Assembly (NCBI RefSeq): GCF_902713615.1
Contig: NC_052155.1
Span: forward strand, 115,839,316-115,903,315
Reading direction: 5' to 3'
Origin: Scyliorhinus canicula
Lineage: Eukaryota
Length of the DNA: 64,000 bases
Under the pieces are notes generated by a model, which was not told where the DNA came from, did no database searches, and was given only the letters and a program-made list of their open reading frames with translations. Shown in pieces: positions 1 to 50,208 of the stretch; within the stretch, counting starts at the first letter, position 1; the number at the start of each line of letters is the position of its first letter. The position numbers and the translations under genes are program-made.

Positions 1-2946
1 TCTGGGAGGCGCTGAAGGCGGTGGTTCGGGGGAGTTGATCTCCATTTGGGCCCACAGGGAGAGAGAGGAGCAGAGAGAAAGGGAGAGATTGGTGGGGGAG
101 ATGGTGAGGGTGGACAGGAGGTACGCGGAGGCCCCGGAGGAGGGATTGCTGAGGGAGCGGCGCAGCCTTCGTGCTGAGTTCGACTTGTTGACCACCAGAA
201 AGGCAGAGGCTCAATGGAGAAAGGCTCAGGGTGCGGTGTACGAGTATGGGGAGAAGGCGAGTAGGATGCTGGCACACCAGCTCCGTAAGCGGGATGCGGC
301 TAGGGAGATTGGTGGAGTTAAGGACCGGGGAGGAAATGTAGTGCGGAGGGGGGTAGACATTAATGGGGTCTTCAGGGACTTTTATGAGAGACTATATCGG
401 TCCGAACCTCCGGCGGAGAAGGGGGGGATGGGGCGCTTTTTGGACCGGCTGAGATTCCCGAGGGTGGAGGAGGAACGGGTGGAGGGTCTGGGGGCGCCAG
501 TTGAGCTTGAGGAGCTGGTTAAAGGGTAAGGGAACATGCAGTCAGGGAAGGCGCCGAGGCCGGATGGGTTCCCGGTTTAATTTTACAAGGCGTATGCAGA
601 CCTGCTGGGCCCCCTGTTGGTTAGGACCTTTAACGAGGCGAGGGAGGGGGGGCTTTTCCCCTGACGATGTCTCGGGCGCTGATCTCTTTGATCCTTAAGC
701 GAGACAAGGATCCCCTGCAGTGTGGGTCATACAGGCCGATCTCACTCCTGAATGTGGATGCCAAGTTGTTGGAAAAGATCTTAGCCACGAGGATAGAAGA
801 TTGTGTGCCGCAGGTTATCCACGAGGATCAAACGGGGTTTGTGAAGGGGCTGGCAGCTGAACACTAATATACGGAGGCTCTTGAACGTTATTATGATGCC
901 AGCGGTGGAAGGGGAGGCGGAGATAGTGGTGGCGCTAGATGCGGAGAAGGCCTTTGATAGGGTCGAGTGGAGGTACTTGTGGGAGGTGCTGGAAAGGTTC
1001 GGGTTTGGGGAGGGGTTTGTCAGTTGGGTGAGGCTGTTGTATGAGGCCCCGATGGCGAGTGTGGCCACGAATAAGAGGAGGTCGGAGTATTTTCGACTAT
1101 ACCGAGGGACGAGGCAGGGGTGTCCCCTGTCCCCCCTACTTTTTGCGCTGGCAATTGAACCCTTGGCTATGGCGCTGAGGGAGTCGGGGGATTGGAGGGG
1201 GCTGGTCCGGGGTGGGGAGGGGCACCGAGTGTCGCTCTATGCGGATGACCTATTGTTGTATGTGGCGGACCCGGTGGGGGGAATGCCGGCGGTGATGGGG
1301 ATTCTCCGGGAATTTGGGGATTTCTCAGGGTATAAGCTTAACTTTGGGAAAAGCAAGCTGTTTGTGGTACACCCGGGAGACCAGGAGGGGGGGGGGGGGT
1401 TGGGAGGCTCCCACTGAAAAGGGCGGAGAGGAGCTTCAGGTACTTGGGGGTTCAGGTGGCCAGGAGCTGGGGGGCCTTGCATAAGCTAAACCTCACAAGG
1501 CTAGTGGAGCAAATGGAGGAGGAGTTTAAGAGGTGGGGCATGCTGCCGCTGTCTTTGGCGGGTAGGGTGCAGTCAATCAAGATAACGGCGCTCCCGAGGT
1601 TTCTGTTCTTGTTCCAGTGCCTCCCCATCCTTATCCCAAAGGCCTTTTTTAGGCGGGTTAACAGGAGCATTACGGGGTTTGTGTGGGCACACGGGACTCC
1701 AAGGGTGAGACGGGTGTTCTTGGAGCGGGGATGGGGGCTGGCATTGCCCAACCTCTGTGGGTATTATTGGGCTGCCAACTCAGCGATGGTGCGTAAGTAG
1801 GTAATGGACGGGGAGGGGGTGGCAGGGATGAGGCTGGAGATGGCATCCTGTGTGGGTACGAGCCTGGAAGCGCTGGCAACGGCGCCGCTGCCGCTCCCTC
1901 CGACGAGGTATACCACGAGCCCGGTGGTGGCAACTACCCTCAAGATTTGGGGGTAATGGAGGCGGCACAGGGGGGAGGTGGGGGCCTCGATGCGGTTCCC
2001 GATACGGGGGAACCACCGGTTTGTTCCGGGGAGAATTGATGGCGGGTTCCTGAGTTGGCACAGGGCAGGTGTCAGGAGGCTGGGGGACCTGTTCATAGAC
2101 AGGAAGTTTGCGAGGCCTGGGTGAGCTGGAAGGGAAGTTCAGGTTCCTCCCGGGGAACACCTTTAGGTACATGCAAGTAAGGGCGTTTGTCAGGCGGCAG
2201 GTGGCGGGGTTCCCCCTGCTGCCGCCGCGTGGGGTCCAGGACAGGGTGCTCTCGGGGGTATGGGTTGGAGAGGGGAGGATCTCGGAAGTGTACCAGGTGA
2301 TGCAGGAGGTAGACGAGGCCTCGGTGGAGGAGCTGAAAGATAAATGGGAGGAGGAGCTGGGTGTGGAGATTGAGGAGGGGACGTGGGCGGATACCCTAGA
2401 AAGGGTGAACTCCTCCTCTTCGTGTGCGAGGCTTAGCCTCATACAGTTTAAGGTACTGCATAGGGCTCATATGACCGGGACAAGGATGAGCCGGTTTTTT
2501 GGGACCGAGGACGGGTGTATTAGGTGCTCAGGGAGCCCAGCAAACTATGGCCACATGTTCTGGACATGCCCAGCGCTGGGGGAATTTTGGAAGGTTGTAG
2601 CAAGGACGGTATCGAGGGTGGTAGGATCCAGGGTCAATCCAGGCTGGGGACTCGCAATATTTGGGGTTGCAGTGGAGCCGTGAGTGCAGGAGGCGAAAGA
2701 GGCCGGTGTTCTGGCCTTTGCGTCCCTAGTAGCCTGGCGGAGGATTCTTCTTCAGTGGAAGGATGCGAGGCCCCCAAGCATGGAGGCCTGGGTCAACGAT
2801 ATGGCGGGGTTTATTAAATTGGAGAGGGTGAAATTTGCCCTAAGGGGGTCAGTGCAGGGGTTTTTCAGGAGATGGCAACCATTCCTAGATCTCCTGGCAG
2901 AACGGTAAAAACAAAAGGTCAGCAGCAGCAGGAACCGGGGTGGGGG
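1..2946 (+). mobile_element. L1-clade LINE, ORF2 (linker, RT, C-terminal Cys region), degraded; 5' part outside the window, 3'UTR cut off in a G-rich tract
   Basis: ORF fragments with GSYRPISLLNVDAK, DAEKAFDRVEW, GTRQGCPLSPLLF, LYADD and C-terminal CxRC...HMFWTCP; stop at 2908; multiple stops and frameshifts; near-identical to the copy at 45134-48996. Confidence 0.93.
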
Positions 2947-5900
2947 CGAAACCCCCGTGGTAGTACCCCTGGAAAAACCAAATAGCCGCTCGTGATGGGT
3001 CTGGTTGGTGGCCGTACATTGGAGGGACCTAAGAGCATGGAGCGCGTCGGGGAGGACCTCCTGCCAATGGGAGGTCGGGAGCTTCCTGGACCGGAAGGTC
3101 AGTAGGATGGTCTTCCAGACCATCGCGTTCTCCCTCTCCACCCGCCCGTTCCCCCTGGGGTTATAGCTGGTAGTCCTGCTCAAGGCGATGCCCTTTATGA
3201 GCAGGTACTGACGCAGCTCGTCACTCATAAAGGACGAACCCCTATCGCTGTGTACATAGCTGGGGAAACCAAACAGGGTGAAGATACTATGCAGGGCCCT
3301 AATGACTGTGGGAGGTCATATCGGGGCACGGGATAGCAAAGGGGAAGCGAGAGAACTCGTCTATTACGTTCAGGAAGTACACATTCCTATTGGTCGAGGG
3401 GAGTGGCCCTTTGAAATCGATACTTAGGCGTTCAAAGGGCCGGGAGGCCTTGACCAGGTGGGCCCTGTCTGGTCTATAGAAGTGCGGTTTGCACTCCGCA
3501 CAGATCGGGCAATCCCTGGTGATGGCTTTTACCTCCTCGGTGGAGAAAGGCAGGTTTCGGGCTTTGATGTAGTGGGCGGGCCGGGTGACCCCCGGGTGGC
3601 AGAAGTCATTGGGGATAGCTTTGAGGCGGTCGTCTTGTGCGCTGGCGCACGTGCCACGGGACAGGGCATCTGGGGGCTCGTTAAGCTTCCCCGGTCGGTA
3701 CATGATATCGTACTTGTAGGTGGAGAGTTCGATCCTCCACCGTAGGATCTTATAGTTTTTAATTTTGTCCCTTTGTGAGTTGTCAAACATAAAGGCAACC
3801 GATCTTTGGTCGGTGATGAGGGTGAACCTCCTACCTGCGAGGTAGTGCCTCCAGTGACGTATAGCTTCCACGATGGCTTGTGCTTCCTTTTCGACCGAGG
3901 AGTGTCGAAGTTCCGAAGCGGAGAGGGTTCGGGGGCAAAAGGGCAACTGGTCTCCCTGCCTTACTTAGTGTGGCAGCGAGAGCAACCTCTGAGGCATCGC
4001 TCTCTACCTGGAAAGGGACGGATTCATCCACCGCCTGCATGGCCGCTTTGGCGATGTCTTCCTTGATACGAGTGAAGGCCTGACGAGCCCATCCGATAGA
4101 GGGAAGAGTGTGGCCTTAAATAGTGGGCGGGCTTTGTCCGCATACTGAGGGACCCACTGGGCATAATATGAGAAAAGCCCCAGGTACCTTTTGAGGGCCT
4201 TGGGACAATGAGGGAGAGGGAGCCCAGGTCGGGGCCCAGGACTCCGTTTTCCATGACATAGCCGAGGATGGCTAGCCTGGTCATGCGGAAAATGCATTTC
4301 TCCGTGTTGTAAGTAAGATTAAGTTTCTGGGCAGTTTGGAGAAATCGATGGAGGTTAGCGTCGTGGTCCTGCTGATCATGGCCACAGATGGTGACGTTGT
4401 CCAAGTACGGAAACGTGGCCCGCAGCCCGTACTGGTCCACCATTCGGTCCATTGCTCGTTGGAACACTGAGACCCCATTCGTGACGCCAAAGGGAACCCG
4501 GAGGAAGTGGAAGAGGCGGCCGTCAGCCTCAAACGCCGTGAAGTGGCGGTCCTCCGGGCGGATTGGGAGCTCGTGGTATGCAGACTTCAGATCCACCGTG
4601 GAGAAGACGCGATAGTGGGCGATCTGATTCACCATGTCTGCAATCCTGGGGAGGGGGTACGCATCGAGGAGCATGAACCGATTAATGGTTTGGCTATAGT
4701 CCACTACCATTCGGAATTTTTCCCCGGTCTTGACGACCACCACCTGAGCTCTCCAGGGGCTATTACTGGCCTCTGTGATCCCCTCACGTAGGAGCCTATG
4801 GACCTCGGTTCTGATAAACACCCTGTCCTGCAGGCTGTACCGCCTGCTGCGAGTGGCTACGGGTTTGCAGTCCGGCGTGAGATTGGCAAAGAGTGGAGGG
4901 GGGTCGATTTTTAGCGTAGCAAGGCTGCAAATAGTGAGCGGGGGCAAGGGCCCGTCGAAGCTGAGTGTGAGTCTTTTCAGGTTACACTGGAAGTCGAGTC
5001 CCAGTAGAGTGGGGCGCAGAGTTCAGGGAGCACGTACAGCTGGAAGTTCGAGTAGCTAGTGCCCTGGATCGTTAGGGTCGCAACCGTGCGCCCTTGGAGG
5101 TGAACAGAGTGAGAGCCCGAAGCGAGGGAGATAGTTTGCCGTGCAGGGAAGATAGAGAGCGAACAGCGTCTTACCAGATCTGGGTGTACGAAGCTCTCGG
5201 TGCTCGGAGTCGAAGAGGCACGATGTCCTGTACCCGTTGATTTCAATGGTCATCATGGAGTTGCGGAGATGTTTCGGATGCGACTGGTCCAAAGTCACCG
5301 CGCTGAGTTGCGGGTAGTCAGCGGCTGGATCAACTGTGCTGGAGTGGCCCCGTGATGACTGCCCTCTGAATTCGTAGCCTTCGAGGCGATTTTCTGAGCG
5401 AGGAGAGGAAGGATACCAAGATGCCCGCCCCCGTGGATCGCACGTGGCGGGCGGCGAGGAAGATGGCGGCCCCCATGAGTCGCACGTGGCCGGCCGCGTG
5501 GAGGGGGGTTGCCAAGATGGCGGCCCCCATGAGTCGCATGTGTCGTTTGGGGGCGGAGTCGGAGTACAGGCCGCAGCATTTCGGGGCCTGCGGGCCTGTG
5601 GAGTTTGAAAACGAGTGCTCTGGGAGGCTGCGGAAGAGTTAGGAGATGGGGCCTGCTTTGCCAGGCAGACCCGGGCATAGTGTCCCTTGCGACCGCAGCT
5701 GCTGCAGGTCGCGTTACGGGCCGGGCAATACTGCCGTGGGTGCTGGGGCTGCCCGCAAAAATGGCATCCTGGAGCTGCGTGGTGGCTGGGTGGCCGCGCG
5801 GCGCAGGCCTGGGGAAGTCGCTGGTCGGGGGCCCAGGATGGGGTCGCTTGGTCCGCGGGGAATGAGGTGAGGCTGCGGAACGAGACCAATTCTACCGTGT

Positions 5901-6691
5901 CCTCTAGATTCTGGGCCCCTTTTTCGAGCAACCGCTGGCGTACATAGTTTGATCTGAGGCCTGCCACGTACACATCCCCGACGGTGAGCTCCATGTGCTG
6001 TTCGGCTGATACAGCCTGGTAATTACAGTCCCGAGCTAAAGTCTTTAAGTCCCGCAGGAATTCTTCCAACGACTCCGCGGGGCGCTGGCGGCGGGTTGTA
6101 AAAATATGGCGCGCGTAGACCTCATTGATGGGCCTCATGTACATTCGATCTAGCATGGCTAGGGCCCCCGTATACGAGTTAGTACTATTGAGTTGAGTAG
6201 ATATACGGTGGCTCACCCTTGCGTGCAGTAGATTGAGTTTCTGCTCCTCTGTAGTTTCTGGAGTACTTGGATTCAGCTAGGTAGGCCTTAAAACATCTGA
6301 GCCAGTGTTGAAAGATTTCTCTTGCCTCTGCAGCCTGCGGGTCGAGTTCTAGTCAGTCAGGTTTGAGGGCTGATTCCATAGTCGTTTTCTTCTAGTTTCC
6401 TAAGACTATTAAATTGATGTGACCATCAATTCACAAGACACGTGGTTGAAAGTGAACAGTGGTTTTAATAGTCTTACAACAGAACCTGCCTACGACGTGA
6501 TGAACTGGCAGGCAGGCTCACGACTGCAAAGCTTTATACTTCCGGTTAGTGGGAGGAGGCATGGGCGGAGCCCAGTACAAACTCATCTCCCCCAATGGGC
6601 AGAGCCACGCAACTGCTCGTATACCGAGCTAACATGAATACAGAACATCATATAACAACAGTGTGAATTACGCGGAATGTGATTCACCACA
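2947..6691 (-). mobile_element. Ty3/Gypsy (Mag-like) LTR retrotransposon A: 5' LTR, gag-PR-RT-RH-IN, 3' end missing
   Basis: Gag ATG at 6379; double CCHC knuckle CHFCGQPQHPRQYC..CSSCGRKGHYARVC; protease LFDS; RT YLDN; RNase H; integrase; frameshifted. Confidence 0.93.
6415..6691 (-). repeat. 5' LTR of element A (277 bp)
   Basis: TGTGGTGAA...CATCA termini on the minus strand; TATAAA and ATTAAA inside; immediately upstream of gag. Confidence 0.85.
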
Positions 6692-6748
6692 GGTAGCTTC
6701 CCCTTTTTCGGGATCAACAAAATCGTCACCTTGTCAACGTTGCTGGCA

Positions 6749-6780
<32 letters not shown>

Positions 6781-8526
6781 ACCCCCCCACTGAACATCCC
6801 CAACAGGCGGGGGCCAACTCTGTCGCAAACTACTTATAGAATTCTGCCAGAAAACTATCCGGGCCAGGGACCTTCCACAACTGCATTCCTGATTCTATCC
6901 ATCACCTCCCTCAGCCCCAGCGGCTCCTCCAATGCTTGCCTCTTCCCCTCCTCCAACACTGGGAACTCTAACCATCCAGAAACCATCCCATATCCCCATC
7001 TCTGCACCCGACTGAGCCTTATACAACTTCTCCTAGTACCCCTTGAACATCTCATTTATCTTTTCCAGCTCCGATACCATCTCCCCCTTTTCTGCCCTTA
7101 CCGTTAAAATATCCTTAGACGCTGCCTACTGCCGCAATTGGTCGGCTAGCATACCTTCTCTCCATACTCATACTGCAATCCCCTCGCCCTCCACAGCTGA
7201 TTTACCTATCATCAGGCTATCAAACTGCTTTTCAACCTCTTCCTCTCCACCAGCAACTTCTTGGTAGCCAAGTATCTTCTATCCACCTCCACTATCTCGT
7301 CCAACAGCCGCCTAAACTCTTCCTCCCTCCTCCTGTCTCTATGAGCATTAAACAAAATAATCTAATCTCGGACCACCACCTTTAAAGCTTCCAAAAACAT
7401 GGCTGCAACACTTCCCCATTCTGATTCAGTTCCACATAATTCCTAATCGCCACCCTCACCTACCCACAAAACGCCTTGTCCGCCAGAAGTCCCGAATCCA
7501 ACCTCTGCACCTGCCCCGAACTGAGCCTCATATGTAGCCAACGCGGCCTGTGGTCCGAATCACAATTCCCACATATTCCACCCCACCACCTCCATCAGCA
7601 TCGCCCGACTCACAACAAATAAAATCAATTCTAGAATACACCTTATACACGTGTGAAAATAAATACTCCCTGCCCCCAGGTTTCTAAACCTCCGCGGATC
7701 CACCCACCCCATGCTCTCCATAAATTCTCCCAGCTCCTTCGCCATCCTGGACCTTTCCACCTTCAGTTCTATTACACAGTTAAAATCCCCTCCCATGATC
7801 AACTGGTGCGGGTCTAGGTCTGGAATCACCTCCAGTAGCTTCTTTACAAACCTCCGCATCATCTCAGTTATGCGCATATATGTTGACTAACACTACCGGC
7901 GCCCCCTCTAACACCCCACTCACTATTACAAACCTTCCCCCCGGATCTCTCACCTCCCTGGCCCTCACAAACTCAGTTTTCTTGCTTAACAAAATGACCA
8001 CCACCTTGACTTCAAATCAAACCCCAAGTTAAATACCTGTCCCACACATCCCTTCACCCAGATATGAGTCTTCTGCAAGAAGATCACCTCCGCTCTCAAA
8101 CCCCTCAGGTGTGTGAAAACCCTGGACCTCTTGACCGGTCTGTTCAACCCATGGGCATTTCATGCGGAGGCTTGCGACTCCCCTCCCCCCGGCTATCATC
8201 CGCCATCGTCCCTCTTCGATTCTGCTTCTCCCAATTCCCCACTCCATCCATGACCACTCTCATCCACCAAATCTGCCGTGGTGCACCCCCATTCCTCCTC
8301 CCCGCCACACTTTCGTTCACCGGCATTCCTTGCTAGCGTGGCATCTCCGGCCCAAAGGTCCTCCTGCATCCCTCCCCCCACCAATCCCACCTTGGCCTAC
8401 CCAACCGGCCCCCAACCACCTTGAATAACGGCCAAACCATTAACACCACCCAAGGAGCCCCAACAAACACACCCCTGACATGGAAAAAACACTGCAATTC
8501 ACAAATAACCTCCTCCCCCAAAAAGC

Positions 8527-9494: not shown

Positions 9495-9848
9495 CAGGTC
9501 TCCTCTAGCTGAGGTGATAAAGTACTTCAATCAGTATTGCTCTCTGAAAAAGGATGAAACTTAAACATGGCACATGGCGTATCCAGAAAGAACAGCTTCA
9601 AATAGAAAGCCATATCAAAATGTCTCATACAAGTGAGCGGGTTGCACAGCAGACCAGCATGCTCAACAAAATTTTTTTTGACACCAACAAGAAAGAAGCA
9701 CTGGCGCCATAAGCACTGTCACGCAATAGAAAAAGAAATGTGGTCAGCGTGGGCAGCCATTTTGAGAGCACTGTGACGCAGTCGAAAAAGAAACGTTGTC
9801 ACAGAGTGGGTGGCCATTTTAAGTGGCCAACCAGAGCCGTCATCCTAT
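9495..9848 (+). mobile_element. Probable gag remnant of an older Gypsy element (E), putative host of element B
   Basis: Gag-like peptide EVIKYFNQYCSLKKDET and a ~55-bp imperfect tandem repeat; a matching 3' remnant and LTR lie at 17790-18873. Confidence 0.4.
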
Positions 9849-10501
9849 TGTGGTGAACGTATTGTACTAACCATTCACCACTGTATTACATTGTATCACG
9901 CTGTTGCCCATGTGGGCTCCATCTATGGACCATTGTATTGTACTACAGAGAATGTATCATGTTGGTGCCCTTGTGGGCTCCGCCCCCTTGAGGGGACATA
10001 TAAAGAGCAGCTGCCCTGTAGGCGGCTCTCACTAGCAGAGCAGTCGCAGCCAGGCACTGTTCTCGTCGATTAAAGTCACTGTTCACTTCAACTCTCTGTC
10101 TCGCGTGAATTGATGGTCGCATCAATTTAATCGAATACAACATCGCTATGGAAGCAGCCGTCAAACCTGACTGACTGGAACTCGACCCACAGGAAGCCAA
10201 AGGAATTTTTCCACACTGGCTCCGATGTTTTGAGGCCTCCCTCGCCGCCTCCTCCTTGCCCACCATTACCAATGAACAGAAGCTGAGCCTCCTCCACGCT
10301 CAGGTGAGCCATCAAATCTCTGTACAACTACGTGAAGCCGATGAACGAACTGTACGCGCGGCATCTCCTCACCACTTGTTGCCAATGCCCCGGAGAATCG
10401 CTTGAGGAGTACCTACGCGACCTCAAAGTCCTCGCGCGAAGCTGCAACTACCAGGCCGTCACGGCCTCTCAACATATGGAACTCACCTTCCAGGACACCT
10501 A

Positions 10502-10606
10502 ATGTAACGTAATGTAAATCGCTTATTGTCACAAGTAGGCTTCAATGAAGTTACTGTGAAAAGCCCCTAGTCGCCACATTCCGGCACCTGTTCGGGGAGG
10601 CTGTTA
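10502..10606 (-). mobile_element. 5'-truncated SINE inserted in gag of B
   Basis: Reverse complement of the 3' half of the SINE at 18438-18626, with a short repeat tail. Confidence 0.8.
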
Positions 10607-10781
10607 CGTGGCTGGAGTCAGGTCCAACTACGTCAGACAGCGCCTGCTCGAGAAAGGCGCCCTCGACCTAGAAGAGACGGTAAAACTAGCCACCTCCCTA
10701 GAAGTAGTGTTCCAAAGCCTCAACGCATTCCCGTCGGATCACCCGACCCCCCTCGTGGACCCCCGACTAGAGAGTACCTCA

Positions 10782-11165
10782 GGCCTGTGCCACGTGGCTG
10801 CCCGCCCAACCCAGGGGGCTACCCTGCTATTTCTGCGGCTAGCACCAGCACCAAGGCAAGGCCTGTGCCGCGCGGCTGCCCGCCCAACCCAGGGGGCTAC
10901 CCTGCTATTTCTGCGGCTAGCACCAGCACCAAGGCAAGGCCTGTGCCGCGCGGCTGCCCACCCAACCCAGGGGGCTATCCTGCTATTTCTGCGGCTAGCA
11001 CCAGCACCAAGGCAAGGCCTGTGCCGCGCGGCTGCCCGCCCAACCCAGGGGGCTACCCTGCTATTTCTGCGGCTAGCACCAGCACCAAGGCAAGGCCTGT
11101 GCCGCGCGGCTGCCCACCCAACCCAGGGGGCTACCCTGCTATTTCTGCGGCTAGCACCAGCACCC
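10782..11165 (+). repeat. 78-bp tandem repeat, about 5 copies, within gag of B
   Basis: Unit GGCCTGTGCCGCGCGGCTGCCC...CACCAAGGCAA; 26-aa periodicity in the ORF track. Confidence 0.95.
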
Positions 11166-12335
11166 CAGGCAGCACTGCCCGGCTCAGAATGCGAACTGCA
11201 GCGACTGCGGCAAAAAGGGAGACTTTGTCAAAGTTTGCCTGGCCTGGTCCAAATCCTCCAAATCGCAGGCCCGACTCTTGGACTCAGGCCCGCAGACCCC
11301 GCAGTGTGGCTGCGTGCCAGTCGGCTCTGCCCCCTCCGGACGCGTCATCTGCCTCGTGTTGTCCGTGGGGGCAGTCATTTTCAACTCCGCACAACACGTG
11401 TAACTCATGGGGGCCCCCACCTTGGACGTCATCTTCCTCCCTGCCCGACACGTGCGGCCAACGGGAGCTGCCATCTTGGCCGCCATCTGCAATGCCGCCT
11501 GACACATGTGACCGACAGGGGCAGCCATCTTGGGACCACCCCATCACCTCCGACCACGCCGGCTACCCGCAACTCGGCACGGTCACTCTTGACCAGTCAT
11601 GGCCAAAACACCTCCAGAACGCCATGATGACCGTCCGGGTCAATGGACACGAAACGCCTTGCCTGTTTGACTCTGGGAGCATGGAGAGCTTCATTCACCC
11701 AGATTCGGTAAGGCGCTGTTCGCTCCAAATCTTCCCTGCACTTGAAACAATCTCCCTCGCTTCCGGATCGCACTCAGTGCAGATCCAGGGGTACACTGTC
11801 GCGAACCTTGCAATACAGGGCGCTGAGTATGCCAATTTTAAACAATATGTACTCCCCGATCTCTGCGCTCCTCTCCTGTTGGTACTGGACTTCCAGTGCA
11901 ACCTCAGGAGCCTAACCCTGAAGTTTGGCGGGCCCCTACCCCCACTCACCGTATGTAGCCTCGCGACCCTGAAGGTCGACCCTCCCCCGCTCTTCGCAAA
12001 TCTCACCGCCGACTGTAAACCAGTCGACACCAGAAGCAGGCGGTACAGTATCCAGGACAGGACTTTTATGAGGTCCGAGGTCCAGCGATTCTTGCGGGAA
12101 GGGATCATCGAGGCCAGTAATAGTCCCTGGAGAGCTCAGGTGGTGGTCATCAGGACTGGGGAGAAGAAGCGGATGGTTGTAGGCTACAGCCAAACCATAA
12201 ACCGGTACATGCACCTCGATGCGTACCTCCTCCCCCGGATAGCGGACATGGTTAATCAGATCGCACACTACCGAGTCTTTTCCACGGTGGATCTGAAGTC
12301 CGCATACCACCTGCTCCCAATCCGCCCAGAGGGCT

Positions 12336-15300
12336 TGTGGTGAGATAACCACTGTAGTTATGTGTACTGCAGTAGGGGGATGTATGCCTGTACCTGTAAT
12401 ACAGGTTCCTCTGGTCAGCCCCTGCCGGCTAGCTCCGCCCACAGGGAGCTTATGTATAAATGTATGAGAGCTGCTCAGACCCTCAGTCTACAGTTGCGGA
12501 TGGAGGGACAACATCGTACAGCAATAAAGCCTCTATTGTACTAGTCTCCCGGCTTTGAGTATAATTGTTAGCGCCACAATTTATTGCTGTACGATTTCCC
12601 AGCCACCATGGACATCAGAATCAAGCCTGACCGTCTGCAGCTGGATCCACATTCGCCTCACGCCAGAAAAGACTTTGATCACTGGCTCGCAGTCTTCGAG
12701 GCCTACATCTCTTCAGCACACCCTCCCCCGACGGAGGCTCAGAAAAAGCAACTCCTGTACTCCAGACTTAGCTCCAGCGTCTTTCCGTTCATTCGAGATG
12801 CGACCGACTACACCGCAGCTATGGAACTGCTCAAGGAGAATTATGCACCATCGACGAACACCCTGTTTGCGAGGCATCAACTTTCTACTCGCGTCCAGCA
12901 GCCGGGTGAGTCGATTGAGGACTTCTGGAGGGCCCTTATACCTCTGGTACGAGACTGCGACTGCCGGGCCCTCAGAAGCCGCGGAACATTCGGATTTACT
13001 CATGCGCGATGCCTTCGTTACAGGCATTGCATCGGACCCCATCCGGCAACGACTGCTGGAAGGGGTCGCCCCCGACCTCGCGGCCGCAAAGGCCCTGGCG
13101 CTCTCCATGACGGCCGCCTCCCGTAGTGCGCACACTTACTCCGCTAGCCACTCGGCCCACCCGTCCTACCCCTCGTGGACCCCGCAAACGGCTCCCCAGG
13201 CCCATCCGTCCCACCCCTCGTGGACCCCGCAAACGGCCCCCCCAGCAGCCGCCCCCGCGCACTATGCCTGCGCTGCCCGCCGCACCGCACCCCCTGGGGG
13301 TCCCCACTGTTACTTCTGCGGCCAACAGAAGCACCCTCGCCAACGCTGCCCGGCCCGCACAGCGACCTGCAAAGCTTGTGGAAAGAAAGGCCACTTTGCA
13401 GCGGTGTGTCAGTCCCAGACGGTCGCCGCTATCGCGCCGCCGGTCCCCACGCCTCAGCCGCTCCCTCAATGGGCCCCGCCGTCCGCTTCCCCCGACCCCA
13501 CGTGCAATCAGTGGGCGCCGCCATCTTTTGCTGCCCCCGCCACGTGCGCCCCATGGGCGGCGCCATCTTCATCCACCACAGCCATGTGCGTTCCATGGGC
13601 GCCGCCATTTTGTTCCGACCCCACAACGTGCGCTCCATGGACGCCGCCATTTTACCCACAGGTACTGCGGATGCCGCCATCTCGTCTCCAGGGGCCGCCA
13701 TCACGGGACACGGGTCGCTACCGCTCCTCGTCGGACTCATCTGACTCAACCGCCGACCAACCACTGCTCGCCTCCGTTACGCTCGACCAGTCCCGTCCTC
13801 GCAACCTGGCACCCTCTTCCACATCGGTGCTGGTCAACGGCCATGTGACCTCCTGCCTCATCGACTCCGGGAGCACCGAGATCTTCGTCCACCCGGACAC
13901 GGTAAGGCGCTATTCCCTTGCGATCCATCCCGCCGACCGGCAGATCTCCCTTGCCTCCGGTTCCCACTCTGTCCCGATCCGGGGTTTCTGCCTGGTTAAA
14001 CTCACTGTACAGGGTGTTGAATTCGACCGTTTCCGTCTGTACATTCTCCCCGACCTCTGCACTTCACTCCTACTAGGCCTGGATTTCCAGTGCAATCTCC
14101 AGAGCCTCACCCTCAAATTCGGTGGACCCCTACCTCCCCTCACCGTTTGCGGCCTCGCGACCCTCAAGGTCGAGCCCCCCTCCCTCTTTGCCAATCTGAC
14201 TGTGGATTGCAAGCCCGTCGCCACCAGGAGCAGATGGTACAGCACCCAGGACAAGGCCTTCATCAGGTCCGAAGTCCAGCGGCTGCTTCGGGAGGGTATC
14301 ATCGAGGCCAGCAACAGCCCTTGGAGAGCCCAGGTGGTAGTGGTTAAGACCGGGGAGAAGCACAGGATGGTCGTGGACTACAGCCAGACCATCAACCAGT
14401 ACACGCAGCTCGACGCGTACCCCCTCCCCCGCATTTCTGATATGGTCAATCAGATTGCACAGTACCGGGTCTTCTCTACTATTGACCTGAAATCCGCCTA
14501 CCACCAGCTCCCCATCCGTAAATCTGACCGTCCCTACACTGCCTTTGAGGTGGACGGTCGTCTGTACCAATTTCTGAGGGTTCCCTTCGGCGTCACGAAT
14601 GGGGTCTCGGTCTTTCAGCGAGAAATGGACCGAATGGTTGACCGGTACGAATTGCAGGCCACCTTCCCGTACCTCGACAATGTCACCATCTGCGGCCATG
14701 ACCAGCAGGACCATGATGCCAACCTTTATAAATTCCTCCACACCGCATCTCTCCTTAATCTCACGTACAACAAGGAGAAATGCGTGTTCCGCACAGACCG
14801 CTTAGCCATCCTTGGCTACGTAGTCCAAAACGGACTACTGGGGCCCGATCCCGACCGCATGCGCCCCCTCATGGAGCTCCCAATTCCCCACTGCCCCAAG
14901 GCCCTCAAACGCTGCCTTGGGTTTTTCTCTTATTACGCCCAGTGGGTCCCGCAATACGCAGACAAGGCCCGGCCACTTATCCAGTCCACACATTTTCCCC
15001 TCTCGGCCGAGGCACAACAGGCCTTCGCCTGCATTCGATCTGACATAGCCAGGGCGGGGATGCACGCCGTAGACGAGACTCTGCCTTTCCAAGTAGAGAG
15101 CGACGCTTCAGATGTCGCCCTTGCCGCCACGCTGAATCAGGCCGGCAGACCCGTGGCATTCTTTTCACGCACCCTCCACGCCTCCGAAATTCGGCATTCC
15201 TCTGTCGAAAAGGAAGCCCAGGCAATCGTTAAAGCGGTGCGGCACTGGAGGCATTACCTGGCCGGCAGGAGATTCACTCTCCTCACTGACCAACGGTCGG

Positions 15301-16949
15301 TAGCCTTCATGTTCAACAACACGCAGCGGGGCAAGATCAAGAATGACAAAATCTTGCGGTGGAGAATCGAGCTCTCCACCTTTAACTACGAGATCTTGTA
15401 TCGCCCCGGCAAGCTCAACGAGCCCCCAGACGCCCTCTCCCGAGGTACATGTGCCAGTGCACAAGTGAACCAGCTCCGTGCCTTGCACGACAGCCTTTGC
15501 CATCCGGGGGTCACCCGCTTGTACCATCTGATCAAAGCCCGCAATCTGCCTTACTCCGTCGAGGAAGTACGGATAGTCACCAGAGACTGCCAGATCTGTG
15601 CGGAGTGCAAGCCGCACTTCTACCGGCCAGATCGCGCGCGCCTGGTGAAAGCATCCCGCCCCTTTGAACGCCTCAGCGTGGACTTCAAAGGGCCCCTTCC
15701 CTCTACCGACCGCAACACCTACATCCTTAGTGTGGTCGATGAATTTTCTAGGTTCCCCTTTGCCATCCCATGCCCAGATATGACGTCTGCCACCGTCATC
15801 AAGGCCCTGGATTCCATTTTCGCCCTGTTCGGTTTCCCCGACTATATCCACAGTGACAGGGGATCCTCATTCATGAGCGATGAGCTGCGTCAGTTCCTGC
15901 TCAGCAGGGGTATCGCCTCCAGCAGGACGACCAGCTACAACCCCCGGGAAACGGGCAGGTAGAGAGGGAGAACGGGACGGTATGGAGGGCTGTCCAGCTG
16001 GCCCTACGGTCCAGGAACCTCCCAGCCGCTCGCTGGCAGCAGGTCCTCCCTGACGCGCTCCATTCCATTCGGTCGCTACTGTGCACCGCAACTAACAGTA
16101 CACCCCATGAACGTGTTTTTGCCTTCCCTAGGAAGTCCACATCCGGAGTGTCGCTCCCGACTTGGCTCACGACTCCGGGCCCAGTCCTTCTCCGTAGGCA
16201 TGTACGGCACCACAAGGCGGAACCCCTGGTGGACAAAGTACGCCTTCTCCAGGCCAACCCTCAGTATGCCTACGTGGAGTTCCCCGACGGCCGCCAGGAC
16301 ACAGTCTCGCTCCGGGACCTGGCTCCCTCAGGTGCCGATCCCATGCCCACACCCCTTCCTGCGCCAACCCCAGCGCCCCCCTATTCGTCCCCATCAGGTC
16401 CATCCCTCATGCCCCTGCCCACCCTGGAGGACATGGAAGATTTTGGCTTGCTCTCGGAGTCATCCCGCCAGCAGCCAGCACCAACACCGCCAGCACCTGC
16501 ACCATCGGGGCCATCACCGCCTGTGCCGACGTCACCACCACAGCTACGCCGCTCACAGCGGAACGTCCGACCACCGATTCGGCTCAACCTGTAACCTGCT
16601 AACCGGATGGACTCTTGATTTTCCTTGTTGGACCCTCTTGTAAATAGCATCCTTTGTATTAGAGTTACATGTCACCCCCGCCGGACTCATTTTTACAGGG
16701 GGTGAATGTGGTGAGATAACCACTGTAGTTATGTGTACTGCAGTAGGGGGATGTATGCCTGTACCTGTAATACAGGTTCCTCCGGTCAGCCCCTGCCGGC
16801 TAGCTCCGCCCACAGGGAGCTTATGTATAAATGTATGAGAGCTGCTCAGACCCTCAGTCTACAGTTGCGGATGGAGGGACAACATCGTACAGCAATAAAG
16901 CCTCTATTGTACTAGTCTCTCGGCTTTGAGTATAATTGTTAGCGCCACA
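12336..16949 (+). mobile_element. Full-length young Ty3/Gypsy (Mag-like) element C
   Basis: 243-bp LTRs at 12336-12578 and 16707-16949 with 2 substitutions; TG..CA ends; 5-bp TSD GGGCT (12331-12335, 16950-16954); PPT ACAGGGGGTGAA at 16695-16706. Confidence 0.97.
12608..16594 (+). pseudogene. Single gag-pol polyprotein of element C (~1328 aa reconstructed), broken by two 1-nt indels
   Basis: gccaccATGg at 12608; frames switch near 12975 and near 15948; CCHC x2, LIDSGS protease, RT YLDN, RNase H, HHCC plus DDE integrase. Confidence 0.9.
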
Positions 16950-17789
16950 GGGCTGCCACTACACGGCCTTTGAGGATGACGGCCACCTCTTCCACTTCCT
17001 CCGGGTCCCCTTCGGCATCACAAACGGGGTCTCTGTCTTCCAAAGAACGACGCACCGAATGGTGGACCAGTACAGGCCGCGGGCCACATTTCCGTACCTG
17101 GACAACGTTACCATCTGCAGCCACGACCAGCAGGACCATGACGCCAACCTCCAGAAATTTCTCCAAACCGCCCAAGCCCTCAACCTCACTTATAACAAGG
17201 AGAAATGCGTTTTCCGCACAACCAGACTAGCCATCCTTGGCTATGTCATGGAAAACAGAGTTCTAGGGCCCGACACCATGCGCCCCCTCCTGCAGCTTCC
17301 TCTTCCCCACGGCCCCATTGCCCTGAAAAGGTGCCTCGGGTTCTTTTCCTATTATGCCCAGTGGGTCCCCAACTATGCGGACAAAGCCCACCCACTGATC
17401 AAAGCTACCATCTTTCAATTGGTGGCTGAGGCCCGCCAGGCCTTCAGCCGCGTCAAGGCAGATATTGCCAAAGCCGCGATGCACGCGGTGGACGGGTCCA
17501 TCCCCTTCCAGGTGGATAGCGACACGTCAGAGGTCCCACCCTCAATCAGGCGGGCAGGCCAGTAGCATGTTTCTCCCATATCCTCAACGCCTCCGAAATT
17601 CAACACTCCTCAATTGAAAAAGCCCAAACCATCGTGGAAGCTGTACGGCACTGAAGGCACTACCTCACTGGTAGGAGTTTCATCCTCGTCACCGACCAAC
17701 GGTCAGTAGCCTTCATGTTCGATAATACACAGCGGGGACAGCGCCCTGTCTGGCACATGCGCCAGCGGGCAAGATGACCGCTGCTCATG

Positions 17790-19539: not shown

Positions 19540-22500
19540 GGACTTCCAGTGGCGGTCATGAAGGTGTGGTCGCACACAGGGTGGCTCCTCCTACTTGAAG
19601 GTGTTGGTTTTGGCCCCTTCTACCCGAACTTTGGGAAATTTTGGCAGAAAGGTTGTGCGGAGAGTGGAGGGGGATTAGTTCTCCCCTAGATGGGCATGTC
19701 AGCGGGTTATCAAACCCGACAGCGAGAGCCCTGTCTAAGGAGCTTGAGGAGATTCATGGCGCAGCATCAATTGCGAAAATTTGGTGGGGGGGTCATTGAC
19801 TGGAAAAATGCCAATGGAGCAATTGATGGCTTCATTAAGGATGAATTTCAACAGCAGTGTGAAGAAATGTAGAGTGACTGGTCAAAGACAATTGAGGGGG
19901 CAGTGGCACCTGTTCGAGGGCCTTTGGAACTGGTGGATAAGTGTCTGGAGGTACAGGGGTTGACGATCCAGGAGGTGGAGAAGGTGGTGTCTGACCAGAG
20001 TGACCGGATTGTGAGGGTGGAAGCAGAGATGGCGATCCTGGAGGACATGCGTAAAATTCTGCGAGCAACGGTCCAGGCAACAAAATCTGAGGTTTGTGGA
20101 GGGAGGGGAGGGGACGAGTGCAATTGGCTATGTCGTGAGGATGCTGGCCAGGTTTGTGGAAGAGAAGGTGCTGGACAAGGCCTCAGAGGTAGATCTGGCC
20201 CATAGGTCCCTGAGGCAGAGGCCAAGATGGGCAGCAGCGGCGGTGATTGTGTGTAGTGAAGTTCCAGGGCAAGGAAAATATTCTGAGGTGGGCCAGGGCG
20301 CAGCAGGATTGTGATTGGGAAGGAGACCAAATCCAGATTTTAAAGGATATTGGTGTGGAGCTGGCCAAGAAATGGGCAGGGTTCAACAAGGCCAAGAGAG
20401 TGTTGTCCCTGGCCAGACTTTAGGTCACTTGAGAGCCAGGAATATTACTTTTGGAAACCAGGAGAGGTGAATGGCTTTATTAAGAAGCATAAACTGGAAG
20501 CTGGGGGAGGGCTGAAGGGGGATTGTGAGTGCAAGTTCTGTCTTCTCAGAAGTGGGGGGGAGGGGGGGGTGGAAGAGCAGGCGCTGGAGGAGCCATTAAG
20601 GCTAAAGGAGGTGATGGAATGAATTGGTATGACGCAGTCGTGTAAGGCGCAGAAGCCGGATGGCTTCCTGGCAGAATTTTAGGAGCAGTTCACAACGGAG
20701 TTGCCCCCCCCCCACTTTTTGGGCATGTTTAATGGTGGAGAAGGCGTAGGCGTCAGTTTCGCTGATCGCGAAAAAGGGGAAGGATCCATTGGAGTGCGGG
20801 TCCTATAGGTCCATCTCACTGTTGTAAATCGACGTGAAAGTTCTGGCAAAGGTATTGGCGAGAAGGCTGGAGGGATGTTTGCTGGAGGTGATCTCAGAGG
20901 ATCAGATAGGGATTGTGAAGGGGAGGAGCTCTCTATTAATACTAGGAGGTTGTTAAACGTAAATAAGACCCCGTCGGCGGGGTTGGAGGGCTGGAGGTGA
21001 TTGTGTCAGTGGACACAGAGAAGGCCTTTGACCGGGTAGAGTGGAGGTATTTGTTTGAAATTCTGTGGCGGTTTGGGTTCGGACGAGGTTTGTGGCGTGG
21101 GTTCAGTTGCTATATGCCTCCCGCATTGCAAGTGTGGTAATGAATGAGATGAACTTGGGTATTTTGGGCCGCACAGGGGTCGAGGCAGGGGTGTCCACTG
21201 CCCCGCTATTGTTCACATTGCCGATTGATCCCCAAGCGATGGTACTTTGGGCCTCGGCTGAGTGGCGGGGAATTGAGAAGGTGGGGGCAGGGAGCCCCGA
21301 GTGTCATTGTATGCCGTTTACCTGTTGCTGTTCGTAACGGACCCATTAGAAAGCATGGGCAGAATCATGAGCTTACTGGAGAGATTAGAGGCCTTTTCGG
21401 GCTATGAATTTAATGTAGGGAAAAGCGAGATGTTCCAGGTGAGTGCAGCAGGGCGAGGAACGACCCTGGGGACACTGCATTTAAGGTGGCACGGTGTGGT
21501 GAATGAGATTCACATGGTATTATAAGTTACCAATGTCACTCTGTTCCAAGTATATATATATGTATCAATATTGTAAGTGCAGTTGCACTACCTGACCACC
21601 AGGGGGAGTAGCTCTGGGAGTACTCGAGAGTTTGTACTGGGCTCCCCCCTTGGCTCCGCCCAGAGCTCCTCCCCCTGGAGCTGCTGTATAAAGATCCGTG
21701 CCACAGAGTCAGCCAGCCAGTTCACCGAAAGTTCAACGGCTAACAGGCTGGCTCTGTTGTAAGTATATTAAAACCACTATTCTAATCCTACAAGCACGAG
21801 TCCGTAGAATTAATGGTTCCATCACAAGGGAGTGGTTCTGGTACCTGGGGATTCAGGTAATGCACGGGTGGGCCACGATGCACAAGTGGAATTTGACGGG
21901 ATTGGTGGAGGAGGTTAAGGGGGATGCAGAGGCTAAAGAAATTTTTTCCCACTGACTGAGATGTTTTAAGGCCTACCTGGCAGAAGCCAGCACCGCGGGA
22001 ACAACGGAGGAACAAAAACTCAGCCTACTGCACGCGAGGGTAAGCCACAGAATCTCCACACAGCTAAATCTGGCCGGTTCTTACACCGCAGCGCTGGAGA
22101 TATTGGACAAATTTACGTTAGGCCCATTAACGAGGTTTATGCACGCCACGTGTTTACGACTCGCCGTCAGCGGCCTACAGAAACGCTTGCCGAATTTGTT
22201 AGGGAACTGAACAATCTCTCCAATGACTGTAATTATCAAGCCGTTACCGCGGCTGAACATAAGGAGCTTGCTGTGCGGGACGTTTTCGTAGCGGGCCGTA
22301 GATCGAACTACGTGCGCCAAAGATTGCTAGAAAAGGGGGCCCAGGACTTGAGATACTACTGTGGAGGCTGCTACCACTATGGAAGTCTCCTTGCGCAGCC
22401 TCACCTCCTTTCCCACGGACCCCGCGACCTCATCGTGGACCCCCGACCAACAATCCCCCCAGGCCTGTGCCGCACGGCCCCCCAGCTACCGCGCTGCCAA

Positions 22501-25500
22501 AGCCAGTTACTCTGCTGCCCCAGCCAGCTACTCAGCCTGCCATTTCTGTGGCCAAAGCCAGCACCCGCGGCAGCACTGCCCAGCCTGATCCGCGACCTGC
22601 AGCAGCTGTGGGAAGAAAGGCCACTATGCCAGAGTGTGCCTCGCGAAAAGGGCCCCAGTTTCTAACTCCCCAGTAGAGAGAACAAATCGCTCCCAACACC
22701 AGCGGGCCCGAAACGCTGCGGCCTACGCCCCGACTCCGCCCCCTCCCGCCACGTGCGATCCATGGGGGCCGCCATCTTGGCAAACCCCCACCACGCGGCC
22801 GGCCACGTGCGACTCATGGGGGCCGCCATCTTCCTCGCCGCTCACCACGTGCGATCCACGGGCCCCATCTGCATCTCCATGCTCAGATAGCTCATCTGAA
22901 GACTACGACTTCCCCGGGCACTCATCACGCGGCCCGCAACTCAACGCGGTCACCCTAGATGAATCCCGCCCCAAGCACCTACGAAGTTCGATGGCGGAGG
23001 TCCAGATCAACGGGTACAGCACGCCATGCCTCTTTGACTCCGGGAGCACAGAGAGCTTTATACACCCAGAGCTGGTAAGACGCTGTTCGCTTCCTATTTT
23101 TCCTGTGAGCCAAACTATCGCCCTCGCTTCGGGCTCCCACTCAGTCCAAATCCAAGGACGCACCGTCACTACGCTCACAATTCGAGGCGCTAGTTATTCA
23201 AAATTTAAACTTTATGTCCTGCCTGACCTCTGCGTGCCACACTTATCAGGCCTGGAATTCCAGTGCAACCTCAAGAGTCTCACCCTCAGCTTCGGCGGGC
23301 CCCTGCCCCCTCTCACTATCTGCAGCCTAGCCACGCTGCGCATCTCCCCCCCATCTCTCTTCGCCACTCTCACTCCAGATTGCAAACCAGTAGCTACACG
23401 CAGCAGGCGACACAGCCTACAGGATAGGGTCTTTATCCGATCGGAGGTCCGACGGCTGCTCAGTGAGGGGATCATAGAGGCCAGTAATAGCCCCTGGAGA
23501 GCTCAGGTGGTGGTCGTCAAGACTGGGGAAAAGTTTTGCATGGTCGTCGACTATAGTCAGACCATAAATCGCTTTACGCTCCTAGACCCGTATCCCCTCC
23601 TCAGAATTGCATACATGGTTAACCAAATCGCCCAATATCGGCTATTTTCCACGGTGGATCTGAAGTCTGCATACCACCAACTCCCAATCCGCCCGGAGGA
23701 CCGCCACTACACAGCGTTCAAGGCCGATGGCCGCCACTTCCATTTCCTCCGGGTTCCCTTCGGCATCACTAACGGGGTTTTGGTGTTCCAACGAGCAATG
23801 GACCGAATGGTAGACCAGTACCGGCTGCGGGCCACGTTTCCGTATCTGGACAATGTTGCCATCCGCGGCTATGACCAGCAGGACCACAAGGCCAACCTCC
23901 ACCGTTTTCTCCAGACGGCACAGGAATTAAACCTAACTTATAACAAGGAGAAATGCGTTTTCCGCACAAACAGACTGGCCATCCTCGGCTACGTCGTGGA
24001 GAACGGAGTCCTGGGCCCAGACCCGGACCGCATTCGCCCCCTCTTAGAACTCCCCCTCCCTCATTGCCCAAGGCCCTCAAACGGTGCTTGGGGTTCTTTT
24101 CATACTACGTCCAGTGGGTCCCTCAATATGCGGACAAAGCCCGCCCACTCTTTAAGGCCAAACGATTTCCCCTGTCTGCTGAGGCGCGCCAGGCCTTCAG
24201 CTGCATCAAGGAGGACATCGCCAAAGCAGCCATGAGGGCGGTGGATGAATCCACTCCCTTTCAGATTGAGGGCGACGCCTCAGAGGTAGCTCTAGCAGCC
24301 ACTTTAAATCAGGCAGGGAGGCCCGTTGCATTTTTCTCCCGTACCCTATCCGCTTCAGAACTCCGACACTCCTCTGTCGAGAAGGAAGCACAAGCCATCG
24401 TGAAGGCTGTTCGTCAATGTAGGCACTACCTCGCAGGTAGGAGGTTCACCCTCATCACCGACCAACGATCGGTTGCCTTTATGTTTGACAACTTGCAAAG
24501 GGGCAAAATAAAAAATGATAAAATCCTTCGGTGGAGGATCGAACTCTCCACCTATAGTTACGATATTAAATATCGACCGGGGGAGCTCAACGAGCCCTCG
24601 GATGCCCTATCCCACGGGACATGCGCCAGCGCGCAGATCAGCTGTCTGAAAGCCATCCACGATGACCTCTGCCATCCAGGGGTCACCCGGCTCGCCCACT
24701 ACATCAGAGCCCGAAACCTGCCTTTCTCCAACGAGGAGGTAAAAGCGGTCACCAGGGACTGCCCGATCTGTGCAGAGTGCAAACCGCACTTCTATAGACC
24801 AGACAGGGCCCACCTGGTCAAGGCTTCTAGGCCCTTTGAATGCCTTGCGATCAATTTCAAAGGGCCACTCCCTTCCACTAACAAGAACATTTATTTCCTC
24901 AACATCATCGATGAGTTCTCCCGATTCCCTTTTGCCATTCCGTGCCCCGACATGACCTCCCACACAGTCATTAGGGCCCTGCACAGTGTCTTCACCCTGT
25001 TCGGTTTCCCCAGCTACGTGCACAGCGACCGGGGTTCGTCCTTTATGAGCAACGGGCTGCGTCGGTACCTGCTCGACAAGGGTATCGCCTCGAGCAGGAC
25101 TACCAGCTACAACCCCAGGGGGAACGGGCAGGTGGAGAGGGAGAACGCGACAGTCTGGAAGACCGTCCTACTGACCCTCCGGTCTAGAAAACTCCAAGTC
25201 TCCCAATGGCAAGAAGTCCGCCCAGACGCGCTCCACACAATCAGATCCCTCCTCTGTACAGCGGCAAACCAACCCCCTCACGAGCGGCTCTTCATTTTTT
25301 CTAGGGGCACTACCACGGGGGTCTCACTTCCGGCGTGGCTGAGGACACCCGGCCCGGTTCTCCTGAGGAAGCACATCAGGGGGCACAAAACTGACCCCCT
25401 TGTTGAAAAGGTGCGCCTCCTCCATTCCAACCCCCAGTACGCATTTGTGGAGTTCCCGGACGGTCGCCAGGACACAGTATCCCTTCGGGACCTGGCACCC

Positions 25501-42397: not shown

Positions 42398-43266
42398 TAA
42401 GAAATGTATCTAATAACTGTAATATACAAGTTGTACTGTGACAGAGGTAGTTGGTGTTTTGAGGCAAGATTTGTCCTTACCACTACTAGAAACTGACAGG
42501 ATGACAATCCCCTGCCAGAGTGGCTCCCAGAGATAAAATATTTAATCAGCACATAAAGCAGATATTCCGCTGGAAGGTTCTCTCCTCACAGCCTCCCTCA
42601 AAGATACACAGTTCCAGTAACTGACTTTAGGATGCCTAACCCTAAACTAGTTAGAAAACAAGCCTTTGTCCCAGACAATCACCACTAACCAAATGATTGC
42701 AGTGGGCTGACCTGTTTCTTTACTTAAGCTCCAAAACTATTGACGTATTGGCACTGGTTTCATTCACAGAAATATTTTTTGTCCCGTTGTTTTCGCCTCG
42801 GGCTGTTCATTTATTTCCTGACGGCTCAAGCAGAATCATCAATAAATTAACACCATCTCCTGCTGAGAGACACAAATCCACCCTCAAATAGTGATAGCTT
42901 CTTTTCGGTAGTCTTCAAATTTTTAATTGCCCATGTATCCTCAAAAGGATTTATACCACACAAAAAAAGCATCACGTGGACCGTCCCTCTGAACTAATGG
43001 CTGGTCTGAAATCTCAAACAATTTCACACTTCCCGAGCGCCGCGGCAAATGGGCACTTGGGGCAAAGCAATTTCCGTGTCTCTTCTGCATTCTCTCTCCC
43101 CAGCCATTTTTTTTGACAGTTCATCATCACATGTGTCATTTTAATTTGGAGTTGGGGGCGAGGATGGATGGATGGAGTGACTCACATTAGCCACTTCCTC
43201 TTTCGAGCCCTGGGGGGGTTTGGGGTGAACTATGGATAGAGGGGATTGTTAAAAGTATCACAGTGA

Positions 43267-45432: not shown

Positions 45433-45465
<33 letters not shown>

Positions 45466-50062: not shown

Positions 50063-50096
<34 letters not shown>

Positions 50097-50208
50097 AAGA
50101 GTTATTTTCTTGTTTTGGTGTGGAAACACGCCTTGTTTGTTTTAAATTGCGGGGAGAAAATTTGTTATTGTTATTAAAAAACTTGCATAAAAATTTTTTT
50201 TTTTTTTT
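43267..50208 (+). mobile_element. Outer 5'-truncated L1 in RPL7 intron 5, antisense to the gene, split at 45133/49012
   Basis: ORF2 fragments; 15-bp TSD AAAGTATCACAGTGA (43252-43266, 50209-50223) at a TT/AAAA site. Confidence 0.93.
45134..48996 (+). mobile_element. Inner L1 (nearly complete ORF2 plus 3'UTR) nested in the outer L1
   Basis: LQETHL, NVYAPN, SDH endonuclease motifs, RT, C-terminus, AATAAA and A tail; 15-bp TSD AATCTGGGGACAGTG (45119-45133, 48997-49011). Confidence 0.94.

Follow-up and report, generated by a model that had tools for sequence, protein, structure and literature searches.

To our knowledge, self-priming of reverse transcription has been established experimentally only for the fission-yeast retrotransposons Tf1 and Tf2, with predictions also made for the related chromoviruses and for a small number of plant lineages. 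In Tf2, a self-primer within the RNA's R region pairs with the primer binding site, the reverse transcriptase (RT) cuts the primer free, and synthesis of complementary DNA (cDNA) follows (PMC5341516); Tj1 primes in the same way (PMC4600332). Neumann et al. (2019; PMC6317226) add predictions for Tcn1 and TAR, which indicate that self-priming is not confined to one lineage. Here we describe element C, a long terminal repeat (LTR) retrotransposon in a 64,000-nucleotide (nt) stretch of the Scyliorhinus canicula genome (contig NC_052155.1, positions 115,839,316 to 115,903,315 of the forward strand; the whole stretch is hereafter the window, and coordinates are its own). The sequence behind its 5' LTR is not of the transfer RNA (tRNA) type, and it can pair with part of the LTR of C itself. 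We consider it likely, on the evidence of sequence comparison, that minus-strand synthesis is primed at this sequence and that C is a self-primed LTR retrotransposon, similar to Tf1 in this respect and belonging to a Ty3/Gypsy clade that lacks a chromodomain.

Element C is a complete young LTR retrotransposon occupying 12336-16949, with the following features:

12331-12335 and 16950-16954: target duplication GGGCT, 5 base pairs, flanking the element
12336-12578, plus strand: 5' LTR, 243 nt, TG...CA, a direct repeat of 16707-16949 (99% identical)
12455-12460, plus strand: TATAAA box in the 5' LTR, by sequence reading
12485, plus strand: predicted transcription start, from TATA/initiator geometry; the A of an initiator-like TCAGTCT, 30 nt past the TATA
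12513-12528, plus strand: LTR segment ATCGTACAGCAATAAA, the proposed self-primer and exact complement of the site, with AATAAA at 12523-12528 as its 3' end
12529-12575, plus strand: remaining R and U5, an irregular hairpin whose foot is the GCC directly after the segment
12579, plus strand: spacer, a single A, between the terminal CA (12577-12578) and the primer site
12580-12595, plus strand: putative primer binding site TTTATTGCTGTACGAT, not of tRNA type; complementarity ends sharply after 16 nt
12608-15962, plus strand: gag-pol coding region, two CCHC knuckles and then protease, RT, RNase H and integrase
16695-16706, plus strand: polypurine tract acagggggtgaa, directly before the 3' LTR
16707-16949, plus strand: 3' LTR, with a second copy of the segment at 16884-16899 and no primer site behind it

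The initial annotation of this DNA had reported that no TGG follows the 5' LTR of C and that a perfect 16-nt complement ending at the poly(A) hexamer stands there instead, and both its coordinates and its letters are correct. No tRNA-type TGG site is present behind the 5' LTR, and TTTATTGCTGTACGAT is the perfect reverse complement of ATCGTACAGCAATAAA, the last six bases of which are AATAAA. When up to two mismatches are allowed, the 16-mer TTTATTGCTGTACGAT is found in the window only at 12580 (plus strand), 12513 (minus strand) and 16884 (minus strand, the 3' LTR copy), three matches against a chance expectation of 0.01 from shuffles. The long open reading frame (ORF) of C has the domain order protease, RT, RNase H, integrase, and two CX2CX4HX4C knuckles lie upstream of the pol domains. 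The gag of C is frameshifted, as the ATG at 12608 (gag ORF 12608-13126) is out of frame with the ORF 12555-15962, and this long ORF ends at a stop within integrase (15960-16107), the remainder of which is encoded in the ORF 16107-16643.

The domain order, the TG...CA LTRs, the short target duplication and the polypurine tract are those of Ty3/Gypsy elements (Metaviridae), and the nearest solved structure is Ty3 Gag-Pol (E = 1e-64). No chromodomain was found in four full-length polyproteins (P0004, P0003, P0024 and P0071), which contain protease, RT, RNase H and integrase only, so that the element does not count as a chromovirus. Among the protein relatives, cartilaginous fishes supply the best (Scyliorhinus 84%, Hypanus 80%, Narcine 70%), and others, at 50-60% identity, come from a sea anemone, from whipworms, from a woodlouse and from numerous metagenome contigs. 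Two CCHC knuckles, LTRs of 96-309 nt and elements of about 4-4.6 kb are Mag/SURL-like traits, in line with the Mag-like type named in the initial annotation, though not exclusive to Mag, and the LTR end motifs are ambiguous, with the TGTGGTG of C fitting the CsRN1 motif TGTGGYG and others resembling the Mag C motif TGTNATRT (motifs from PMC3601003, Table 3).

The DNA of these relatives was examined in the surroundings of nine homologous proteins and at 80 metagenome loci located by protein alignment. The same layout is present in 20 of the 26 relatives that are flanked by both LTRs, and these, together with two further copies in the window and the relative L007, give 23 elements with 20 distinct segment cores. 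An inverted-repeat scan upstream of gag, or reading by eye, reveals about 14 more elements, some with one or two mismatches, which brings the relatives with this layout from outside the window to about 35. In almost all relatives the site begins one base past the terminal CA (CAA, then the site); it opens with TTTA or TTTT in every element except L008, which has TCAA, and the gag ATG follows 0-40 nt behind it. Segments and sites from widely separated hosts include:

Narcine (ray): segment CTTTTGCTAATAAAA, site TTTTATTAGCAAAAG
Actinostola (sea anemone): segment TTATCAGAATAAA, site TTTATTCTGATAA
Armadillidium (woodlouse): segment TTTAGTGGAATAAA, site TTTATTCCACTAAA
Trichuris (whipworm): segment of 16 nt, site of 16 nt, one mismatch
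L086: segment ATTTTTGTTGATTAAA, site TTTAATCAACAAAAAT

The sites follow the LTR of their own element. The mean exact run of complementarity is 13.3 nt with the own LTR and 3.4 nt with the LTR of another family (maximum 10), and at positions 7-13, which lie outside the shared TTTA/TAAA, 6.65 of 7 bases are paired with the own LTR as against 2.69 of 7 with that of another family. Covariation across families, for which the initial annotation had called, is also present. In an alignment of 15 elements (A2) with a 14-pair stem, tested against 500 shuffles, 94.7% of cells are paired compared with 63.1% after shuffling, and 54 cells are changed on both sides compared with 14.3, a number reached in none of the 500 shuffles. 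When the partner is slid by 1-3 columns, pairing falls to 32-48%. Only one G:U cell occurs in this alignment, and it comes from the misaligned row of L008. A compensatory pair is seen even between near-identical copies from one metagenome (both at 5925-5999), in which ...GTTTATTAAA faces TTTAATAAAC... in L015 and ...GTTGATTAAA faces TTTAATCAAC... in L016, a difference of G/C versus T/A; in L014, a neighbouring copy, the site has one change that is not compensated. Change that is confined to Watson-Crick pairs would follow if every cycle renewed the site as a DNA copy of the primer, as happens with tRNA primers, and would not be expected of a stem selected merely as an RNA helix. The proposal that these elements prime themselves without a tRNA is thus strongly supported by pairing with the own LTR across relatives.

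The 3' end of the segment is as regular as its pairing. It reads NNTAAA(A) in 22 of the 23 elements, with the hexamers AATAAA, ATTAAA, GTTAAA, GATAAA, AGTAAA and CATAAA, and GCC or ACC (RCC) stands directly after it. The hexamer is probably a working poly(A) signal, since a U- or GU-rich stretch follows in most LTRs. There are three departures from this link to the poly(A) signal: L008, which has GTTTGTGATGTTGA followed across the junction by GCCTAATAAA (GTTGA before the junction) and its hexamer past the junction; L053, in which the segment ends in GAAGA before GCC, with no hexamer there; and L017, in which the segment ends in GTTAAA and the loop contains a canonical AATAAA together with a GT-rich tail. 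In view of these exceptions the invariant point is the junction between segment and RCC, and a hexamer end is common but not obligatory. As such, the earlier suggestion that the primer RNA is cut at the AAUAAA describes most families and does not extend to L008, L053 and L017. Cutting by the polyadenylation machinery was considered and rejected, as L008 and L053 keep the layout with no hexamer at the segment end; moreover, a polyadenylation cut falls 10-30 nt after the hexamer and not at it. Just ahead of the LTR's TG, polypurine tracts throughout the clade finish in GAA or TAA (16695-16706 in the window; about 10436-10447 in L001), and because tract end and primer end are both A-rich, a preference of RNase H for cutting after a run of A would offer an alternative reason for the A-rich end of the primer.

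Predicted folds of the leaders are consistent with this arrangement. The stem of segment and site is part of the minimum-energy fold in all 23 leaders; the predicted leader of C (12485-12612) folds at -40.9 kcal/mol (z = -3.6), and that of the minus-strand copy in the window at -33 kcal/mol (z = -1.65). The loop between segment and site measures 21-56 nt, the lower figure being that of L042 and L089. In 13 of 22 elements, where shuffled loops would give 5.2, a hairpin that begins at loop base 1-2 is predicted to stack on the stem, although the loops themselves are not alignable, and the RCC after the segment is often the foot of this hairpin. A comparison with Rfam gave no family above threshold over the region; its sole match to the stem, a plastid 3' untranslated region hairpin at 25 bits against a cut-off of 48, was dismissed as chance.

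We propose that the RNA of such an element would be primed as follows. A segment of 13-17 nt in the R of the 5' LTR would pair back to the sequence one base past U5, closing a loop of 21-56 nt that comprises the rest of R and U5 and usually opens with a hairpin footed on GCC or ACC. The element's own RT/RNase H would then cut the RNA at the junction of segment and GCC/ACC, and the new 3' OH, in most families that of the last A of the hexamer, would be extended across U5 and the remaining R. The short cDNA would transfer to the 3' R through about 15-45 nt of homology, namely the stretch between junction and poly(A) site, and synthesis would continue as in Tf1 and Tf2. Plus-strand synthesis would finally copy the primer, such that each cycle would write the site anew from the segment of the LTR; families would for this reason differ in their letters and yet show perfect Watson-Crick matches.

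The start of the RNA bears on how far this priming resembles that of Tf1. In six shark and ray copies (C, the minus-strand and outer elements of the window, the element at 21495, L001 and L007) a TATA-like box is followed 30-32 nt downstream by a YCA initiator. The predicted start places the segment at +29 to +44 in C, and in the other shark and ray copies the segment begins at +31 to +44, so that in these copies the RNA probably does not begin with it, unlike in Tf1. The strongest alternative is that the geometry is the ordinary one of Tf1, in which the RNA would begin at the first base of the paired segment and the upstream TATA and initiator would not be a working promoter. The primers of Tf1 and Tj1 are the 5' end of the mRNA, and a sharp 5' edge of complementarity, such as is seen here, is what would be expected if plus-strand synthesis ran off the 5' end of the primer. 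We nevertheless regard this alternative as unlikely, as the TATA boxes and initiators of the six copies set the start 29-44 nt before the segment, and no initiator-like motif is found where the segments start. L009 (Logan), which extends from within the segment to 14 nt past the hexamer, was considered as a transcript that might mark the ends of the RNA, but its ends overlap by 30 nt like an assembly cycle and it comes from a metagenome sample, and it was set aside.

Several observations weigh against self-priming from an internal segment as we propose it. The sharp 5' edge just mentioned speaks against an upstream start, and in L008 the segment is preceded by only 40 nt of LTR, which means that not every lineage could have an upstream start. 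A primer with a 5' tail would also demand a stop to plus-strand copying of that tail, which in Tf1 is provided by the 5' end of the RNA and which our model leaves unexplained. Many of the sampled loci come from few metagenomes and are not all independent, about 29 distinct segment sequences remaining. The site is absent or lost in several copies, namely the element at 21495, L020, L026 and L084. In L084 (300-420; 52% identity) the gag ATG apparently stands directly after the CA (ttcttacaATGGCGGCG) and no complementary segment was found; this element may prime in another way, or its LTR end may have been misjudged. Finally, what the sequences show is anatomy, conservation and covariation, and from these we infer the start of the RNA, the cut with its position and enzyme, the use of the 5' copy and the primer itself.

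The primer might also be supplied by the 3' R copy of the same RNA, or by a co-packaged partner RNA, and not by the 5' leader. The segment is indeed present in the 3' LTR as well (16884-16899), and sequence cannot tell pairing in trans from pairing in cis. By our reasoning, a cut past the 3' segment would remove the downstream R and tail needed for the first jump, and would yield cDNA attached to the 3' portion of the genome itself. As such a cut would detach the transfer homology, we hold a 3' or trans primer to be quite improbable; the initial annotation had allowed for either copy of R, and of the two the 5' copy is the simpler source, as in Tf1 and Tf2.

It is less probable still that the stem is structural only, serving to mask the 5' poly(A) signal or in packaging or dimerisation, and that the real primer is something else. 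In most families the stem does bury the hexamer, and would do so at the 5' end only, since the 3' LTR has no site behind it; a 5' poly(A) hairpin is known from HIV-1, which lends this explanation some weight. It would leave the element with no other candidate primer site, as gag begins 0-40 nt past the stem, and would not account for a site placed exactly one base past the CA or for the near absence of G:U pairs, which a stem acting at the RNA level would tolerate. In addition, L008, L053 and L017 retain the stem with the hexamer outside it, and by breaking the link to the hexamer they argue that hiding the 5' poly(A) signal, a role suggested in the initial annotation, is not its general purpose. 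Masking of the 5' hexamer is a possible side benefit of the self-priming that we favour.

Priming by a host tRNA, tRNA fragment or other small RNA is hardly credible: half-tRNA and internal-tRNA priming do exist in copia-type elements, according to Neumann et al. (2019; PMC6317226), but the sites differ in every family, even among the three in the window, and match their own LTR, which in practice excludes a host RNA, they start with TTTA or TTTT, which cannot pair with any CCA end, and neither a tRNA gene (ARAGORN) nor an Rfam family was found, in a search that covered the 64-kb window.

The other related elements of the window were compared with C in the same manner:

6401-6691, minus strand: element of a second family; LTR 6691..6415, segment TAAGACTATTAAA at 6476..6464, a single A, then site TTTAATAGTCTTA at 6413..6401; 13 nt
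9849-10134, plus strand: older outer element hosting C; LTR 9849-10124, segment TCGATTAAA at 10066-10074, a single A, then site TTTAATCGA at 10126-10134; 9 nt, the rest decayed
21495-26278, plus strand: related element without a site; LTR ending in ...CCATCACA at 21826 and holding TAAGTATATTAAA (21760-21772)

The layout of C thus recurs in two more copies with different letters, as first reported, and one of the four related elements (21495-26278) lacks the site. The outer element is interrupted by C in its RT region (9849-12335, resuming at 16950-17741), and no 3' LTR of it was found within the window. In the element at 21495-26278 an identical foreign piece of 98 nt stands behind the CA of both LTR copies (21827-21924 and 26181-26278), taking the place of the primer site and the first 65 nt or so of the leader; TTAA(AA)GGTGG is common to both flanks, and when a site was sought after either possible LTR end the longest complement was 7 nt. 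The piece may represent an LTR lengthened by aberrant priming, or a rearrangement.

Further repeats were noted around these elements. A unit of 78 nt is present five times in tandem, the copies 95-97% alike, in the gag region of the outer element (10703-11170), and about 35 consecutive G, in the minus-strand reading, are found at about 6745-6790, just outside the 5' end of the minus-strand element. The Actinostola element (L002) is flanked on both sides by a long array of 53-nt tandem repeats, at 2882-5801 and 9767-10404 of its own sequence. The window also contains a GC-rich repeat family, with several copies 70-89% alike at 1-3000 and 43236-50344 (minus strand), which gave no match to the Gypsy polyprotein used.

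The wider proposal, that a clade of animal Ty3/Gypsy elements without a chromodomain, ranging from cnidarians to sharks, primes without a host tRNA from an internal piece of R whose 3' end doubles as the hexamer, is one that we advance only tentatively. If it is correct, a single stem would make the primer, hide the poly(A) signal of the 5' LTR and be renewed from the LTR in each cycle, and the age and spread of self-priming in animals would exceed those of the Tf1/sushi lineage. Finding another geometry in a second large clade, one of animals, would make tRNA independence a recurrent strategy, and such independence might help to explain the presence of close relatives in sea anemones, nematodes, crustaceans and sharks. 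Cleavage would follow a rule of segment before RCC, beside a stacked hairpin, unlike the 'first 11 bases' of Tf1, and the dozens of families with different pairs of primer and site would be a natural experiment on the choice of cut by RNase H and on the plus-strand stop. For annotation, pipelines that rely on tRNA complementarity will label such elements as lacking a primer site; a search for the reverse complement of an LTR segment, one base past the CA, finds them.

The largest survey of LTR structure is silent on the priming of Mag or CsRN1 (PMC3601003). In the literature that we could search, which leaves out key older papers, self-priming is not linked to Mag, SURL, Jule, any chromodomain-less animal Gypsy clade, or the hexamer. 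The poly(A) hairpin of HIV-1 is a local stem in R that buries AAUAAA at both ends of the RNA, in a virus whose primer is tRNA-Lys3; in the elements described here the primer site itself makes up one arm of the stem, which would as such form at the 5' end only. Skipper of Dictyostelium likewise has no TGG, and unconventional priming is suspected, but it has a polypyrimidine stretch and no complementary LTR segment, unlike the shark clade (PMC5006619). Sushi-type chromoviruses are also vertebrate Ty3/Gypsy elements for which self-priming has been predicted (Butler et al. 2001, as reported in papers that cite it); they are relatives of Tf1 that bear a chromodomain, unlike the shark clade. In plants, self-priming of the Gypsy element Tcn1 and the copia element TAR was likewise deduced computationally from complementarity of LTR and site, and the accessible passages describe neither a link to the hexamer nor a conserved junction (Neumann et al. 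2019, PMC6317226).

The closest resemblance is to Tf1 and Tf2 of S. pombe and Tj1 of S. japonicus, in which there is also no tRNA site, the sequence after the LTR pairs with a segment of the element's own R, and an additional RNA structure, of which the stacked hairpin may be a counterpart, adjoins the duplex that RT/RNase H is thought to cut to make the primer (PMC5341516, PMC4600332). The primer of these yeast elements is the very 5' end of the mRNA, whereas that of the shark and ray copies is predicted to lie inside the transcript (+29 to +44). Unlike theirs, the primer described here usually ends in the poly(A) hexamer and forms a longer duplex of 13-17 nt, the hosts are animals, and the polyprotein has no chromodomain. 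The class of mechanism is therefore a known one, and what would be new is the lineage, the conserved junction with its stacked hairpin and the frequent overlap with the hexamer, to which a primer internal to the RNA would probably add a further difference from known self-priming.

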